Shown in pieces: positions 3,640 to 59,587 of a stretch of DNA of 64,000 bases. The stretch comes from Podarcis bocagei (taxonomy: Eukaryota), in the NCBI GenBank assembly GCA_964188305.1, contig OZ076893.1; one strand, 5' to 3'. Position numbers and translations under genes: made by a program. Below the pieces are notes generated by a model that searched no databases, was not told where the DNA came from, and saw only the letters and a program-made list of their open reading frames with translations. Numbering within the stretch: position 1 is the first letter of the stretch; each line of letters starts with the position of its first letter.

Positions 3640-3927
3640 GCCAGTGTGGTGTAGTGGTTAAGAGCAGTAGACATGTAATCTGGTAAACTGGTTTCGCATC
3701 TCCACTCCTCCACATGCAGCTGCTGGGTGACCTTGGGCCAGTCACACTTCTCTGAAGTCTCTCAGCCCCACTCACCTCACAGAGTGTTTGTTGTGGGAGA
3801 GGAAAGGAAAGGAGAATGTTAGCCACTTTGAGACTCCCTAGGGTAGTGATAAAGCGGGATATCAAATCTAAACTCTTCTTCTCCTTCTCCTCCTCCTCCT
3901 CCTCCTCCTCCTCCTCCTCCTTCTTCT
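3640..3927 (+). mobile_element. tRNA-derived SINE (Squam3-like) with (CTT/CCT)n tail
   Basis: Head GCCAGTGTGGTGTAGTGGTTAAGAGC (A box), B-box-like motif; five similar copies in the window. Confidence 0.85.
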
Positions 3928-7226: not shown

Positions 7227-7362
7227 CAGGTTTTCCCAAACTTGGGTCTCCAGCTGTTTTTGGACTACAATTCCCACCATCCCTGACCACTGGTTCTGCT
7301 AGCTAGGGATGATGGGAGTTGTAGTCCAGAAACAGCTGGAGACCCAAGTTTGGGAAAGCCTG
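7227..7362. mobile_element. Short palindromic hAT MITE (136 bp)
   Basis: Near-perfect fold-back; 8-bp TSD ATCTAGGG at 7219-7226 and 7363-7370. Confidence 0.92.
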
Positions 7363-8807: not shown

Positions 8808-9288
8808 CCGTATTTTTCGCCCTATAGGACGCACTTTTCCCCCTCCAAAAATGAAGGGGAAATGTGGGTGCGTCCTATGGGGCGAATACAGGCTTTCGCT
8901 GAAGCCTGGAGAGTGAGAGGCTGTCACTCTCCAGGCTTCAGGAAGCTCTGCGCAACCCTCCGGAGCCCGGCTCGAAGCCGCGCCGGCCTCCGGAAGGTCG
9001 CGCAGAGCTACCTGCCCTCCCGGGGTCCGCGCAGCTCTGCATTCCGAAGCCTCGGGCGCACTCTTTAGCGTGCCCAGGCTTCGCACAGCTGTCCGCAATC
9101 CTGGGGAGACCGGCGAGGCTCCCTAGGCTTGCGGATAGCAGGCTGTTCTGGGGGCTGGGGAAGCTCGGGCTTCTCCTGCACCAGCCTCATGGGGGCGGGG
9201 GGGAAAATAATTTTTTTTTCTTTATTTCCCCCCCAAAAACCTAGGTGCGTCCTATAGGGCGGTGCGTCCTATGGGGCGAAAAATACGG
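8808..9288. mobile_element. Tc1/mariner-pogo-type MITE with GC/CpG-rich core
   Basis: TIRs CCGTATTTTTCGCCC(T/C)ATAGGACGCAC at both ends, with internal repeats of GGTGCGTCCTAT. TA on the left; the right side runs into GT/(TA)n. Confidence 0.85.
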
Positions 9289-14288: not shown

Positions 14289-14567
14289 ACCAGTGTGGTG
14301 TAGTGGTTAAGAGCGGTAGTCTCGTAATCTGGGGAACTGGGTTTGCGTCTCCGCTCCTCCACATGCAGCTGCTGGGTGACCTTGAGCTAGTCACACTTCT
14401 TTGAAGTCTCTCAGCCTCACTCACCTCACAGAGTGTTTGTTGTGGCGAGGAAGGGAAAGGAGATTGTTAGCCGCTTTGAGACTCCCTAGGGTAGTGATAA
14501 AGCGGGATATCAAATCCAAACTCCTCCTCCTCCTCCTCCTCCTCCTCCTCTTCTTCTTCTTCTTCTT
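14289..14567 (+). mobile_element. tRNA-derived SINE (Squam3-like)
   Basis: Same family as 3640-3927; (CCT)n(CTT)n tail. Confidence 0.85.
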
Positions 14568-23729: not shown

Positions 23730-26700
23730 CTAGTAGGGGAAAAACACATCTTTGTTAGTGGTAGTGTATGGGAGTAGCTGGCTGGAGAATCAAGCAGAGG
23801 AGATGAGAGGCTGCAGGTCATTCATTCATTCATTCCATTTATATCCCACCATTCCTCCAAGGAGCTCCACATAGGACACATGGTTGTCCATCTCATGTTG
23901 CCCTCCCAACCACCCCGTGAGGTAGGTTAGGCTAAGAGACAGTGATTGGCCAAGGCTACTGAGTGGGGACTATTATCTTAGTCTCCCAGGTCTTAGTCCA
24001 TCACTCTAACTAGTACATCATGCTGACTGTCTTTTATATGTGGAAGGGGCCCAAAGCCTTTGAGAACCAGCCCAGCTCTGGAGGGTAGCCTCCCAACAAT
24101 AGGAGTGGTTGCATCTGTCACTTTTGGTTTCTCGGTTTCTCAATTTCCCCACTCTTAGTTTCAGTTCTCCACATTTCCACATCAGTTTGCAACTTTTTAT
24201 TTTAAAACATCCTCATGAAAATCATCAGCATTGAACTGCAACTTTCTCCTAAAATACACATTTGTTTTGAGGGGTGGATTCCCAGTACAGTGGGCAGCTA
24301 GCATCTGCAAAGAAAAGGAGGATAAGGGGAGGAGTGAAGGAGAACTACACTAGCCCAAAGCTCACCTTATTATTACTATAAACTATAGTCAAGGCATGCC
24401 TGCCCATGAGGTGGGCTGATGTTGCCGCCTTGGGTGGTGGAATCCTGCGGGGCAGCACTTGTGCAGCAATGACCTCTTCTGGCAAGATCTCGTGAGAGTT
24501 CTGTGAGATCTCGTGAGAGTTCTCCGAGATCTTGCCAGAAGAAGCCACTGCCATGTGACCTAGGCAACTGAGGCTTCTGCGGGAAAGGGCACCTCATGTT
24601 TTGCCACAGGTGGTTAAACAGGATGGGTCCCCCCCCTGACCATAGTTTATCATTACAGCAGAAGAGTCTGCACTAAAATACAGCACCGAGTTGCATTTAA
24701 AGTGTGATTTCAAGACAGTTTGGAGGTTACTGGCTGGAGAAATGCAAAGGGAGCAGAAATGAGTTTCGAAAAGCCTAGTGAGCCCCTCATTGCTCATCCT
24801 CAGAGGAGCAACATAACACAGGCCTGTTTCTGGATAATACTGCTGACAAACATGGCCAAACCTTGACACCTGGCAACATACCACCGTTATAATGTGAATG
24901 GTTTCCTATCTGAAAACTAATATTTGGCTAAAGAGTAAAGGTGACTAGACTGACTATGGCTGCATGGAAAATAAAAAATACCACCACTCACCCCCGCGCA
25001 CATTTTATTACGATTCAGATTTCCAAGTGAGATAACATGTACTGCATACAGGAATATATTAAATATGTGTTTAGAAAAAGCAAGATGATGTAAGATCTTG
25101 TCTCTCTCTCTCTAAATGAGAGTGATACCCAGATCCTCGTGAGTCCCCCTTGCCCCCGTAGTCTTTAGTTGTACTAGAATCCAAGGACATTTAAAGTTAA
25201 AAAATATCAGTTTCTCCAAATCTACTTAATTTCTCTGTGAGGTGTCAGAGGAAATATGGCACCCTAACTGTTCTCAGATTGTAGGGTTATGTGAGGTACA
25301 TAGCATCTTTAGAGAACAGGGAAGTGAAAACCGACACAGCAAAGGTGATCCAGATAAAGAATATAATAGTTCATCCAAAGAGGAAATTAGGCACAAGCTA
25401 ACATGATACTTCACTCTGCCAGAATTTCTTTCAGAGAAGTTGGCTTGTGCATGTTTGAAATATATTTTCATGGTGAATCAGAGGGCGTTCACTCTTCATT
25501 GAGAACTTCAGGCTACAATATGGGGACAGGGGAACCTTGGACCTGGGGGCAGAATGTGATCTTCTCGGCATCCCTCTCTGACCCTCAGTACTCTCTCCAC
25601 AGACCCCTCTCAGGGTCACACTACTCAACACCCCAGATCCACACTCTCCTCAAGTGTTTGGGCCTAAGCAGAATGTCCTTGAACCACAAAAATGCCTATT
25701 GCTTCCCTGAATGGAGGAGGCAGGTACGTATAGAAACCCCTGGTTTTTGTGTAGTTGAAATGTCCAAAGTAAGAGTCTCCTCCATTGCGCCAGCCACTTT
25801 TCTCTCTGGCCCTACCCACCACTGGAATGCAGCCCTTTCTGGAAAGTTCCCCATGTGGGAACATGGTCCTCCTTATTATGGGATTTTTATTCCCACCCAC
25901 ACTCAGATCTTGCTCCCAGTGGGATAGGAAGCTCGGAGTTTGGAAGAGTTGCCTCTCCTTTTGAGGTAGGTCTTCAAACAGCCAAGGTTCTTCTATCACA
26001 AGCATCTTTACATTTTTCTCTGGAAACTACATTTACGAAGGGGTCACCGGCATCCTTTTTCTTGGCCTGCTCTCCTTCTTAGCCTGAAAGAGGAAAATAT
26101 ATGGCTTTCTCCCATTCCTCTCCCTGTGGGCACATCACTGCTATGGGCTTTGTTGGTTTCAGAGGAAGGAAGAGGGTTGGAGGACTGCAAATCTAAATGG
26201 GACATGTTCTTCTCCCGCTCACTCTTCTCTGAGGTGAGCAATATGAGCTCCTTAAAGCTGTATCTGTTCCTGATAATCTTCTCTCACATCCCTAATCACG
26301 GGTCTTCCTCTTACAGAGATGATTGGGGAGCATCTTCATAAATGGATGTGCATTTTGCCCCGGAGTTCCACTGGACACTATAGCAATGGACTACTCGTGG
26401 TAGTTCAGTATTAGCATCAAGACTCAGCATCATAAAACCACTCATGTGGTGCTGCTTGGAGGTTTTAGCATCAAAACCTTTCTGTTATAAGAAGGAAAGA
26501 TGTAAATATATCCCATCTGCAGACCAGTCTTTTGATTCCGTATGCCAAAGATCATGCTTTTTATATCCACAGACTAACCAGTGGATTCACGACTGCCAGT
26601 GATCCACGTGCTATCCAAGATTTAATTTGAAATTCCCCCCACATCCCTCTTAAGGCATTTATTTCTGGATAACAGATCAGTGGCAGAGTGCCTTGAACAC

Positions 26701-35600: not shown

Positions 35601-36014
35601 GAGAGAAACCCTCCCCCAAAAGCCTCCCAAGGATTTAGTATGCTTAGACCCTTCCCGAGCTATAGATGTTAAAAAGAGTTAAAAACAATGCTAGTGATGA
35701 ATGTAAGTGGGGGTGACAATCTCATTCCACGATCAACAAGAGAAATAAAGAAATCTCCAAAGCAAGGAAGGAGAGATGGGTAACCATATACTGTTCAGGT
35801 TGGAGATGAATAAATATATTCCTCCACAATCTGCCCCGCCCCGATTTCTCCCCATTGATCTAGAGCAGGTGCAGCTAAACCTGTGGTTCTCTAGATCAGT
35901 GTTTCCCAACCACTGTTCCGTGGCACACTAGTGTGCCGCGAGATGTTGCCTGGTGTGCCGCGGGAAAAATTAAAAAATTCGAAAGATTTTTTTTTTTAAA
36001 AGTCAGATTTTCGA

Positions 36015-36970
36015 TTGGGGCGCCGTCACTAGATGACCCCAGGGGTTCCCTCCCTCCCTCCCGCTCTGCGCCTCCCTCCTCCTCCTCCTCCGGGGAGGCC
36101 CTTCCTGGCTCTCGGCCAAGGCTTGGCGGCTGCCACTCACTCACTCGCTCGCCCACCCGTCCCTCCATCCCTGCACCCGGCCTCTCCCCCTCCGTCCCCG
36201 GCGCGGGGGCTGCCGGGAACCGTAGTCCCCTCGCCCTTGGGCTCCGCGCCCGCGCGGGGTGCACGAACTACGTTTCCCAGCGTGGCCTGGCGGGCCGGGC
36301 GTTTTGTTTGAAGCGCTCTTCTCCCGGCCATGGAATGAGCGCGGCGGCGGCGGCCGGGCGGGCAGGGGCTCTTCCGCGCAGCCCCCGCGCAGCCTGCCTG
36401 TGCCCCCGCGGAGATCGGGCGGCAGGATGGAGCCCGGGGATCCCCGTGGAGGCGGAGCGGCGGAGGCGGAGGCTGCCCCCCAGGTAGGGCTGCGTCAGGG
36501 GTTTTTTATTTTTGCAATGCTGCATCCGCGCCGGAGGGGACGCATCGGACCGCGGGGAGACCCCTTGGTGGGCGTGCAAGGCAATGCATGCGTGCAGGCG
36601 TTGCATGGAGTGCAGTGCAATGCAATGGCAATGCGGCGCCCTGCATGCATGCATGCAACTTCCACCTTCGCTCCGGACTTGGCAGGTGAGGGGGGTCCCC
36701 AGTGGGCGGCAGAGAGAGCCGGGAGGGCGAAGGGGAGCCGGGGGGGAGCAGCGCTGCTCCCCGAGCCGAGCCCGGGGGGGAAACTTCGGCGTCGTTGTGC
36801 CGGGTGTTGGAAGCGGAGGCTGGCGGGGGCCCCTCACCTGCAAAACCTGGTCGCCTCTCATATATTTCGTGCATTGCATTCATCGCCCGCTTTCTCCTCC
36901 AAGGAGCTCCCGGGGGCGCGCGTGGTTCTCCCCGTGTTATCCTCGCAACAACAGCACTGCGAGGTGGGTC
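36015..36970 (+). promoter_or_regulatory. CpG island / promoter-like segment inside the hAT element, with two oppositely oriented ZNF143/THAP11-type (ACTAC-N3-TCCC) motifs
   Basis: Very GC- and CpG-rich compared with the CpG-depleted background. Motifs GGACTACGGTTCCCGGCAGC (minus, ~36209-36228) and GAACTACGTTTCCCAGCGTGGC (plus, ~36265-36286). Confidence 0.7.
36427..36483 (+). pseudogene. Putative captured first coding exon of an unidentified host gene (MEPGDPRGGGAAEAEAAPQ | intron)
   Basis: Strong Kozak context AGGATGG at 36427, followed after exactly 19 codons by donor CAG|GTAGGG. Lies downstream of the promoter motifs. Source gene not recognised. Confidence 0.45.
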
Positions 36971-37772
36971 AGGCGAGTGGCCCAAGGGAGCACCCAGGGA
37001 TTGTCCTGGCCAGGTGGGGTGATTTGAACCCTGCTCTCTGCCCGGTCTTCGTCCTCATTTAGCCCCCACATGTGCATGACTGTGCATGACTGAGGTTTTC
37101 CCCCCTCGTCTTGGCTATGGTGTGAGTCTGTCCTGTTAATTAATGGGGTTCTGCCTTCGGAGAAGATGAGCCAGCCTTCAAGGAGGTGATTATGTAATTT
37201 GCTAGCAATTCATGTCCCTCCCGGCGTGACGCTGTGCGCTGACGTCATGGGGCTGTAATGGTGGTGTGCCTCGAGATTTTTTTCATGAAACAAGTGTGCC
37301 TTTGCCCAAAAAAGGTTGGGAAACACTGCTCTAGATGCTGCTAGACAGCAACTCCCATTATCCCTGATCACTGACCAATATCTTGAGAGGCATAGTTTCC
37401 CCAAGCCAATCAACAGCATCCTCTCATTTACCATGCTAGCTGCGATTGATTAGCACTAGGAATGTCAGAGGATTCCACTGTAAGCACAGTGCAGCGCAGC
37501 ACTGCCTTTCCACAATGAAATAACACAATGAAATAACTGCAAAGAAGTGAGATGTAAGGAAAATAATGCCAAAAAATGAATATCAAAATATGGTGTCTAT
37601 GTATGGCATTACATACCACAAAAATACATATACGGTATAATTCTACTTACGTGAATAATGAAGCGGGTAGCATATTACAAGGAGAAAAGAAAATTCAGTT
37701 GAGCATATTGACCAATATGTCAGTATGAATGAACGTCAGAATGGAATGAGGCACATTCCTACATCCCTAATG

Positions 37773-40898: not shown

Positions 40899-41176
40899 AA
40901 GAAGAGGAGGAGGAGGAGGAGGAGGAGGAAGAGGAGGAGTAGTTTGGATTTGATATCCCACCTTTCACTCCCCTTAAGGAGTCTCAAAGCGGCTAACAAT
41001 CTCCTTTCCCTTCTTCCCCCACAACAAACACTCTGTGAGGTGAGTGAGGCTGAGAGACTTCAGAGAATTGTGACTAGGCCAAGGTCACCCAGCAGCTGCA
41101 TGTGGAGGAACGGGGAAGCGAACCCAGTTCACCAGATTACGAGTCCACCGCTCTTAACCACTACACCACGCTGGCT
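40899..41176 (-). mobile_element. tRNA-derived SINE (Squam3-like)
   Basis: Reverse-complement copy; tail reads (GAG)n on the plus strand. Confidence 0.85.
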
Positions 41177-54362: not shown

Positions 54363-54611
54363 CAATGTGGTGTAGTGGTTAAGAAAGGTAGACTCGTAAT
54401 CTGGTGAACCGGGTTCGCATCTCCACTCCTCCACATGCAGCTGCTGGGTGACCTTGGGCTAATCACACTTCTCTGAAGTCTCTCAGCCTCACTCACCTCA
54501 CAGAGTGTTTGTTGTGGGGGAGGAAGGGAAAAGGAGATTGTTAGCCGCTTTGAGACTCCTTAGGGTAGTGATAAAGCGGGATATCAAATCCAAAGTCGTC
54601 TTCTTCTTCTT
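54363..54611 (+). mobile_element. tRNA-derived SINE (Squam3-like)
   Basis: Same family; (CTT)n tail. Confidence 0.85.
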
Positions 54612-59318: not shown

Positions 59319-59587
59319 GCCAGTGTGGTGTAGTGGTTCAGAGCAGTAGACTCATAATCTGGTGAACCGGGTTCACTTCCCCGCTCCTCCACATGCAGCT
59401 GCTGGGTGACCTTGGCCTAGTCACACTTCTCTGAAGTCTCTCAGCCTCACTCACCTCACAGAGTGTTTGTTGTGGGGGAGGAAGGGGAATGAGATTGTTA
59501 GCCGCTTTGAGACTCCCGAGGGTAGTGATGAAGCTGGATATCAAATCCAAACTCCTCCTCCTCCTCCTCCTCTTCTTCTTCTTCCTC
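59319..59587 (+). mobile_element. tRNA-derived SINE (Squam3-like)
   Basis: Same family; (CCT)n(CTT)n tail. Confidence 0.85.

Follow-up and report, generated by a model that had tools for sequence, protein, structure and literature searches.

An apparently young, non-autonomous hAT transposon in intron 3 of ANGPT1 carries about 1.05 kb of filler between its ends that was most likely copied from host DNA, a reading given a probability of roughly 0.6. Bracketed by its TSDs and TIRs, the element measures 1,432 bp; it was found in a 64-kb window, which is the whole stretch of lizard DNA that was analysed. Its interior appears to be a mosaic resembling host DNA, combining a CpG island and a pair of M4 motifs with an arrangement of ATG and splice donor and with the relic of a SINE. 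Judged from the sequence, the element is put forward as a candidate Pack-TIR.

The element and its insertion site

ANGPT1 runs through the window on the minus strand. Its exons 2 to 4 match ANGPT1 of Podarcis lilfordi at 100% identity and that of P. muralis at 99-100%, which marks the window as DNA of a Podarcis-like lacertid. The exons are placed as follows.

43090-42932, minus strand: ANGPT1 exon 2
38573-38451, minus strand: ANGPT1 exon 3, matching residues 151-191 of Podarcis ANGPT1 at 100% identity
23731-23498, minus strand: ANGPT1 exon 4
near 14943-14794, minus strand: ANGPT1 exon 5

The element is found within intron 3, just 1.1 kb downstream of exon 3, so that the earlier note, which had placed it in the middle of this intron, was correct about the intron and not about the position within it. 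The putative exon carried by the element is antisense to ANGPT1. The sequences that flank the element, at 35866-35896 and 37337-37400, resemble an older 7227-type MITE, of which they would form the left half (AACCTGTGGTTCTCTAGATGCTGCTAGACAGCAACTCCCATTATCCCTGA), and since the target reads as half of such a MITE the hAT element is taken to be a nested insertion. The copy at 7227-7362 is itself a 136-bp palindromic hAT MITE with TIRs CAGGTTTTCCCAAAC and GTTTGGGAAAGCCTG and TSD ATCTAGGG, and its TIR is related to that of the element.

The two ends of the element consist of the following parts.

35889-35896: left TSD, CTCTAGAT, identical to the right TSD and fitting the hAT target consensus NTCTAGAN
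35897-35911, plus strand: left TIR, CAGTGTTTCCCAACC, complementary to the right TIR at 15/15 positions
35912-36019, plus strand: left subterminal hAT backbone, AT-rich, with GGCACAC at +26 and two copies of GTGTGCCGCGRGA
37076-37313: right inner region and right subterminal hAT backbone, with TGACGTCA at 37240-37247, GTGTGCCTCGAGA and GGCACAC
37314-37328, minus strand: right TIR, the exact reverse complement of CAGTGTTTCCCAACC
37329-37336: right TSD, CTCTAGAT, the same 8-mer as on the left

The inner boundary of the left backbone, at 36019, was set by composition alone, and 37076-37313 is taken as one block in which cargo and backbone are not split. The 15-bp TIRs and the identical 8-bp TSD that the earlier note had described are thus confirmed in every position. 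Within the 64 kb the 15-mer CAGTGTTTCCCAACC has just two matches at up to two mismatches, where 0.22 are expected, and no inner copy of the TIR is found between the two ends at up to three mismatches. Both ends also share GGCACACTNGT, located about 26 nt in, and subterminal GGCACAC motifs, in inverted orientation. The string GTGTGCC(G/T)CG(A/G)GA occurs three times in the element, twice at the left end and once at the right.

Elements of the hAT group are recognised by a TSD of the form nTnnnnAn or NTCTAGAN, the latter being the target consensus from a table of Anolis hAT families (PMC3014272), by short TIRs of about 10-25 bp that start with CAG or TAG, and by subterminal repeats. Here the TSD CTCTAGAT has this form, the TIR is 15 bp long and starts with CAG, and subterminal repeats are present on both ends. 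Moreover, the TIR is identical at 14 of 16 positions to that of the Anolis element hAT-N3_AC, CAGTGGTTCCCAACCT (PMC3014272). Since the TSD fits the consensus and the TIR agrees so closely with hAT-N3_AC, the assignment of the ends to hAT is sound, and the unit is best described as a non-autonomous hAT-type element. The same fit to the hAT target consensus means that the matching 8-mers are less informative than eight random bases would be. No autonomous hAT with the same ends is found within the 64-kb window. The earlier note had suggested, from the perfect ends and the retained CpGs, that the element is recent or unmethylated; the ends are indeed perfect, but they probably set no more than a loose upper limit on its age, in the range of tens of millions of years.

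A scan of metagenomes with the left end returned two insect-like contigs, in which 24-25 nt of the terminus are identical and the interior is unrelated.

JGI contig Ga0136643_10330030, 1106-1128: match to the element terminus
JGI contig Ga0123354_10206628, 1048-1070: match to the element terminus

In these two contigs the matches adjoin CTCTAGAA, and the interior contains a LINE-tail-like ORF. Their hAT-like element may represent the same hAT clade in arthropods. The left end has no match in viral contigs and none in prokaryote genomes. A right subterminal 23-mer is matched exactly in the bacterial MAG contig JAGYWI010000014.1 (4786-4808), but this was rejected as a transposon because it sits inside a bacterial phosphofructokinase-like coding sequence, and it is therefore regarded as a chance match.

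Composition of the interior

Between the hAT ends lies an interior of about 1.05 kb, in which the following features are distinguished.

36020-36960: CpG-island part of the cargo, GC 0.70, CpG o/e 0.79, 91 CpGs
36214-36226, minus strand: M4 (THAP11/ZNF143) motif ACTACGGTTCCCG, an exact match to ACTAYRNNNCCCR (PMC5006282)
36267-36279, plus strand: M4 (THAP11/ZNF143) motif ACTACGTTTCCCA, an exact match to ACTAYRNNNCCCR
36427-36489, plus strand: putative first-exon coding start and donor, comprising an ATG, 19 codons (MEPGDPRGGGAAEAEAAPQ) and CAG|GTAGGG at 36484
36571-36660: TGCA/TGCAA-type low-complexity repeats inside the cargo
36862-37075, minus strand: diverged host SINE relic, with its tRNA-like head toward the right

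With thresholds of length >200 bp, GC >0.5 and o/e >0.6, the 941 bp of 36020-36960 qualify as a CpG island, within a window that as a whole has a GC content of 0.43 and a CpG o/e of 0.31. The other CGI-like stretches of the window are all at most 500 bp long, and the claim that the element holds the sole CpG island of about 1 kb in the window is therefore upheld. A second SINE family, at about 19290, 27300 and 48290, is the source of other short CGI-like windows. A TIR-bounded element at about 8808-9288, with TIRs of about 27 bp (CCGTATTTTTCGCCCYATAGGACGCAC), is probably Tc1/mariner-like, and its interior is CpG-rich, contains a hairpin and scores as a small CpG island. As this element shows, young TEs can have a CGI-like composition of their own.

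No Pfam domain is present in the seven longest ORFs of the interior, and no transposase remnant is therefore recognised, in agreement with the earlier note. The 267-aa interior ORF has no match among 5.8 billion proteins, and exact look-ups of the interior, junction and exon-4 ORFs in prokaryotic, viral or metagenomic collections gave no record. Compared with the rest of the 64-kb window, the element has a single match, a SINE-related stretch of 45 bp. Rfam searches of the cargo gave nothing but sub-threshold matches to miRNA models, at chance level. Outside the element, the palindromic hairpin at 37775-37913 matches the mir-3524 model on both strands with 42 bits against a gathering score of 99, and is probably another MITE.

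M4 is a core-promoter motif associated with THAP11/ZNF143 (PMC5006282, PMC3627581). The two M4 motifs of the cargo are divergent and 41 bp apart, and 0.07-0.16 would be expected per 64 kb. That the pair might represent a degenerate palindromic MITE was considered and ruled out; the motifs are divergent, not convergent, and are not the arms of a MITE because the likeness stops at the 15-mer. Sites for Sp1, NRF1, ETS and CRE occur in the cargo at the level expected by chance for its composition. The MITE at 7227-7362 carries an M4/ZNF143-type motif, ACTACAAYTCCCA, in both of its arms, and M4 is therefore not exclusive to host promoters in this window. Hence the evidence for a core promoter is mixed, in that the M4 pair is highly non-random and yet M4 also occurs in a MITE of the same window.

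The ATG at 36427 stands in a strong Kozak context, with A at -3 and G at +4. Three ATG/donor arrangements are found in the cargo against 0.09 expected from dinucleotide-type shuffles, 8% of which contain any, and the arrangement at 36427 is suggestive only. A search with the exon peptide (residues 47-86 of the ORF) against proteins of 147-467 aa gave no match. Thus the ATG and the donor at 36484 to which the earlier note had drawn attention stand as features of the sequence, whereas the 19-aa peptide finds no counterpart among proteins of that size range.

The SINE relic is colinear with five young SINE copies in the window, and is closer to an old copy beside ANGPT1 exon 4 (23830-24022) than it is to these young copies. 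Aligned to the old copy at 23824-23932 it gives a local score of 44, compared with 17.8 +/- 2.4 for shuffles (z of about 11), whereas an nhmmer search with a profile of the young family detects the relic marginally, at E=0.017. The five young copies, which are tRNA-derived and located at 3645-3881, 14295-14529, 40934-41169, 54366-54603 and 59324-59560, have 92-97% identity to their own consensus and a (GAGGAG)n-side tail. A promoter-like island that gives way to repeat-bearing, intron-like DNA is the expected appearance of a copied gene 5' end, and the cargo may be read in this way.

Origin of the cargo

A series of events can be proposed for the formation of the element. The transposon backbone would consist of the two ends only, a few hundred bp in total, with the transposase region replaced by about 1.05 kb of filler DNA. 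This filler would comprise a CpG-island promoter region with M4 motifs, a possible short first exon, and the start of an intron together with the SINE relic. A double-strand break would have occurred in or at a hAT copy, and repair synthesis would then have switched template to an ectopic locus in open chromatin. Subsequently, an autonomous hAT recognising the same ends would have acted in trans to mobilise the loaded element, which would have inserted into older MITE-like sequence at the CTCTAGAT target in ANGPT1 intron 3. Should the cargo act as a promoter in its new place, the transcripts would run antisense to ANGPT1. Such a scheme draws on published routes to hAT filler and Pack-TIRs, in which template-switching break repair acts where the element resides or precedes a further round of transposition (PMC8277862, PMC3260210).

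It is less probable, and on balance unlikely, that the element belongs to an ordinary multi-copy non-autonomous hAT family whose members have this GC-rich interior as native sequence, with no recent capture from a host gene. The interior could then be what an internal deletion left of the transposase gene of the autonomous element, for example its promoter, leader and first exon and intron, with the SINE nested within it. The M4-type motif in both arms of the related hAT MITE and the CpG-rich interior of another TIR element in the window would both accord with such an origin, as would an 'exon' for which no host protein of 147-467 aa gives a match. Against it, the interior combines segments that are promoter-like, microsatellite-like or the relic of a SINE and does not form a coherent TE unit, and any remnant of a transposase ORF is absent. 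The TE-borne M4 and the other CpG-rich TIR element do mean that neither the CGI composition nor M4 is proof of an origin from a host promoter. Of the host capture proposed in the earlier note, the non-autonomous hAT element with a host-like mosaic inside is supported, and capture from a host gene stands as probable; the protein searches led to no parental locus.

How the cargo came to lie between these ends is a related question. The earlier note had the element arriving as a cut-and-paste unit; a bracketed unit it is, but cut and paste is not the sole route, repair-mediated filling at the site being another. Under such filling, which is judged improbable here, a small hAT-N already resident in ANGPT1 intron 3 would have been filled later by break repair, so that the full 1,432 bp would never have transposed together; this is the gap filling of Tan et al., which is independent of transposition. 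For single-copy Pack-TIRs such in situ repair is the favoured route (PMC8277862), and 98.6% of animal Pack-TIRs are single-copy, which has been ascribed to gap filling (PMC8277862); one copy of the present element is visible within the 64 kb. Gap-filled TEs are nevertheless old, with a median divergence of 18% from their consensus (PMC8277862), whereas the TIRs and TSD here are perfect and suggest a young insertion, a difference that mildly favours the insertion of an already loaded element. Finally, the bracket itself might be a coincidence or an artefact of assembly, with a resident CpG island caught between unrelated TIR-like sequences or between two MITEs. This is very hard to credit. The TSD is a preferred hAT target, and two independent insertions would share the 8-mer about once in 16 cases; against this, there are just two copies of the TIR, the inner ends are absent at up to three mismatches, the subterminal motifs are common to both ends and inverted, and the window contains no Ns. 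The specific case of two independent MITEs around a resident island was rejected because the inner TIRs are absent.

Relation to known capture systems and significance

Gene capture by TIR elements is already documented in animals, where 370 Pack-TIRs are known, of which 208 are hAT (Tan et al. 2021, Nat Commun, PMC8277862). The earlier note, in calling such capture much less well described in vertebrates than in plants, overstated the point, and the element on its own is a candidate for one further case. In that survey, a Pack-TIR has to show both ends of a single TIR element around 100-5000 bp of sequence that is not TE-derived and encodes no transposase, and to have elsewhere in the genome a unique parental copy of at least 90% identity and 80-120% length, itself free of flanking TEs (PMC8277862). 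The present element has ends of this kind around an interior of about 1.05 kb with no Pfam match, an interior that does contain a SINE relic, and its size falls within the 100-5000 bp class of Tan et al. 2021. The one lizard in the survey (anoCar2) has 0 Pack-TIRs and 77 annotated TIR TEs (PMC8277862), and the zero is explained by the small number of TIR TEs annotated, such that squamates were effectively unsurveyed there. No paper on a lacertid Pack-hAT was found in the literature.

The nearest precedent is a hAT Pack-TIR of Xenopus in which a captured 5'UTR has been amplified (PMC8277862). This element, Pack-hAT-N8_XT of Xenopus tropicalis, which carries the 5'UTR of CAPSL, is likewise a non-autonomous hAT whose ends are intact and whose TSD is 8 bp long. 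Inside, it has non-TE DNA that derives from a gene's 5' end, which in the present element is the candidate reading. Unlike its cargo of a 291-bp UTR piece, the cargo here is a whole CpG island of about 1 kb with an M4 pair, in a squamate host. In maize, Ds2 and Ds-like-4 (Du et al. 2011, PMC3260210) belong to the same superfamily, hAT, and have kept their termini and subtermini around an interior of unrelated filler. Occasionally the Ds filler derives from genes, introns included, although such capture is described there as rare among hAT elements (PMC3260210). The maize elements differ in their plant host and in a filler that is not notably CpG-island or promoter DNA (PMC3260210).

Two systems outside the hAT superfamily are also comparable. 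The Helitrons of bats (2014, PMC4224331) are again vertebrate transposons that carry a promoter, a first exon and the start of an intron, with a bias to gene 5' ends, but they are rolling-circle elements without TIRs or a TSD, are present in thousands of copies and have identified parental genes (PMC4224331). The Pack-MULEs of rice, which are TIR elements too, prefer GC-rich gene fragments and abruptly raise the local GC content where they insert (PMC5861414). They differ in belonging to the Mutator superfamily, in their TSDs of 9-11 bp and long TIRs, and in having a plant host and known parental genes (PMC5861414).

A broader reading makes the element a single member of a young lacertid hAT family in which various CpG-island promoters and first exons of the host have been loaded, one after another, into a single cargo position between constant ends, the copies then being scattered through the genome. 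This is offered tentatively, with the odds somewhat against it. Capture by vertebrate TIR elements has so far been described mostly as rare, single-copy and driven by repair; a single case adds little to this picture, and a family that captures serially would be the more interesting object. If true, it would represent the vertebrate TIR-transposon counterpart of GC-rich capture by Pack-MULEs and of promoter capture by Helitrons. Serial capture of CpG islands would bear on the origin of orphan CpG islands and of new transcription start sites, on changes in local GC and CpG landscapes, and on a capture bias towards open, GC-rich 5' ends that would extend across Mutator, Helitron and hAT elements. 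Such a family could seed new CpG islands and, with them, alternative first exons and antisense transcripts, in this instance in ANGPT1. Should the cargo prove to be a genuine promoter and first exon of the host, a cut-and-paste transposon would have moved a ready-made CpG island into a new vertebrate gene and, if active, this copy would drive transcription antisense to ANGPT1 near exon 3.
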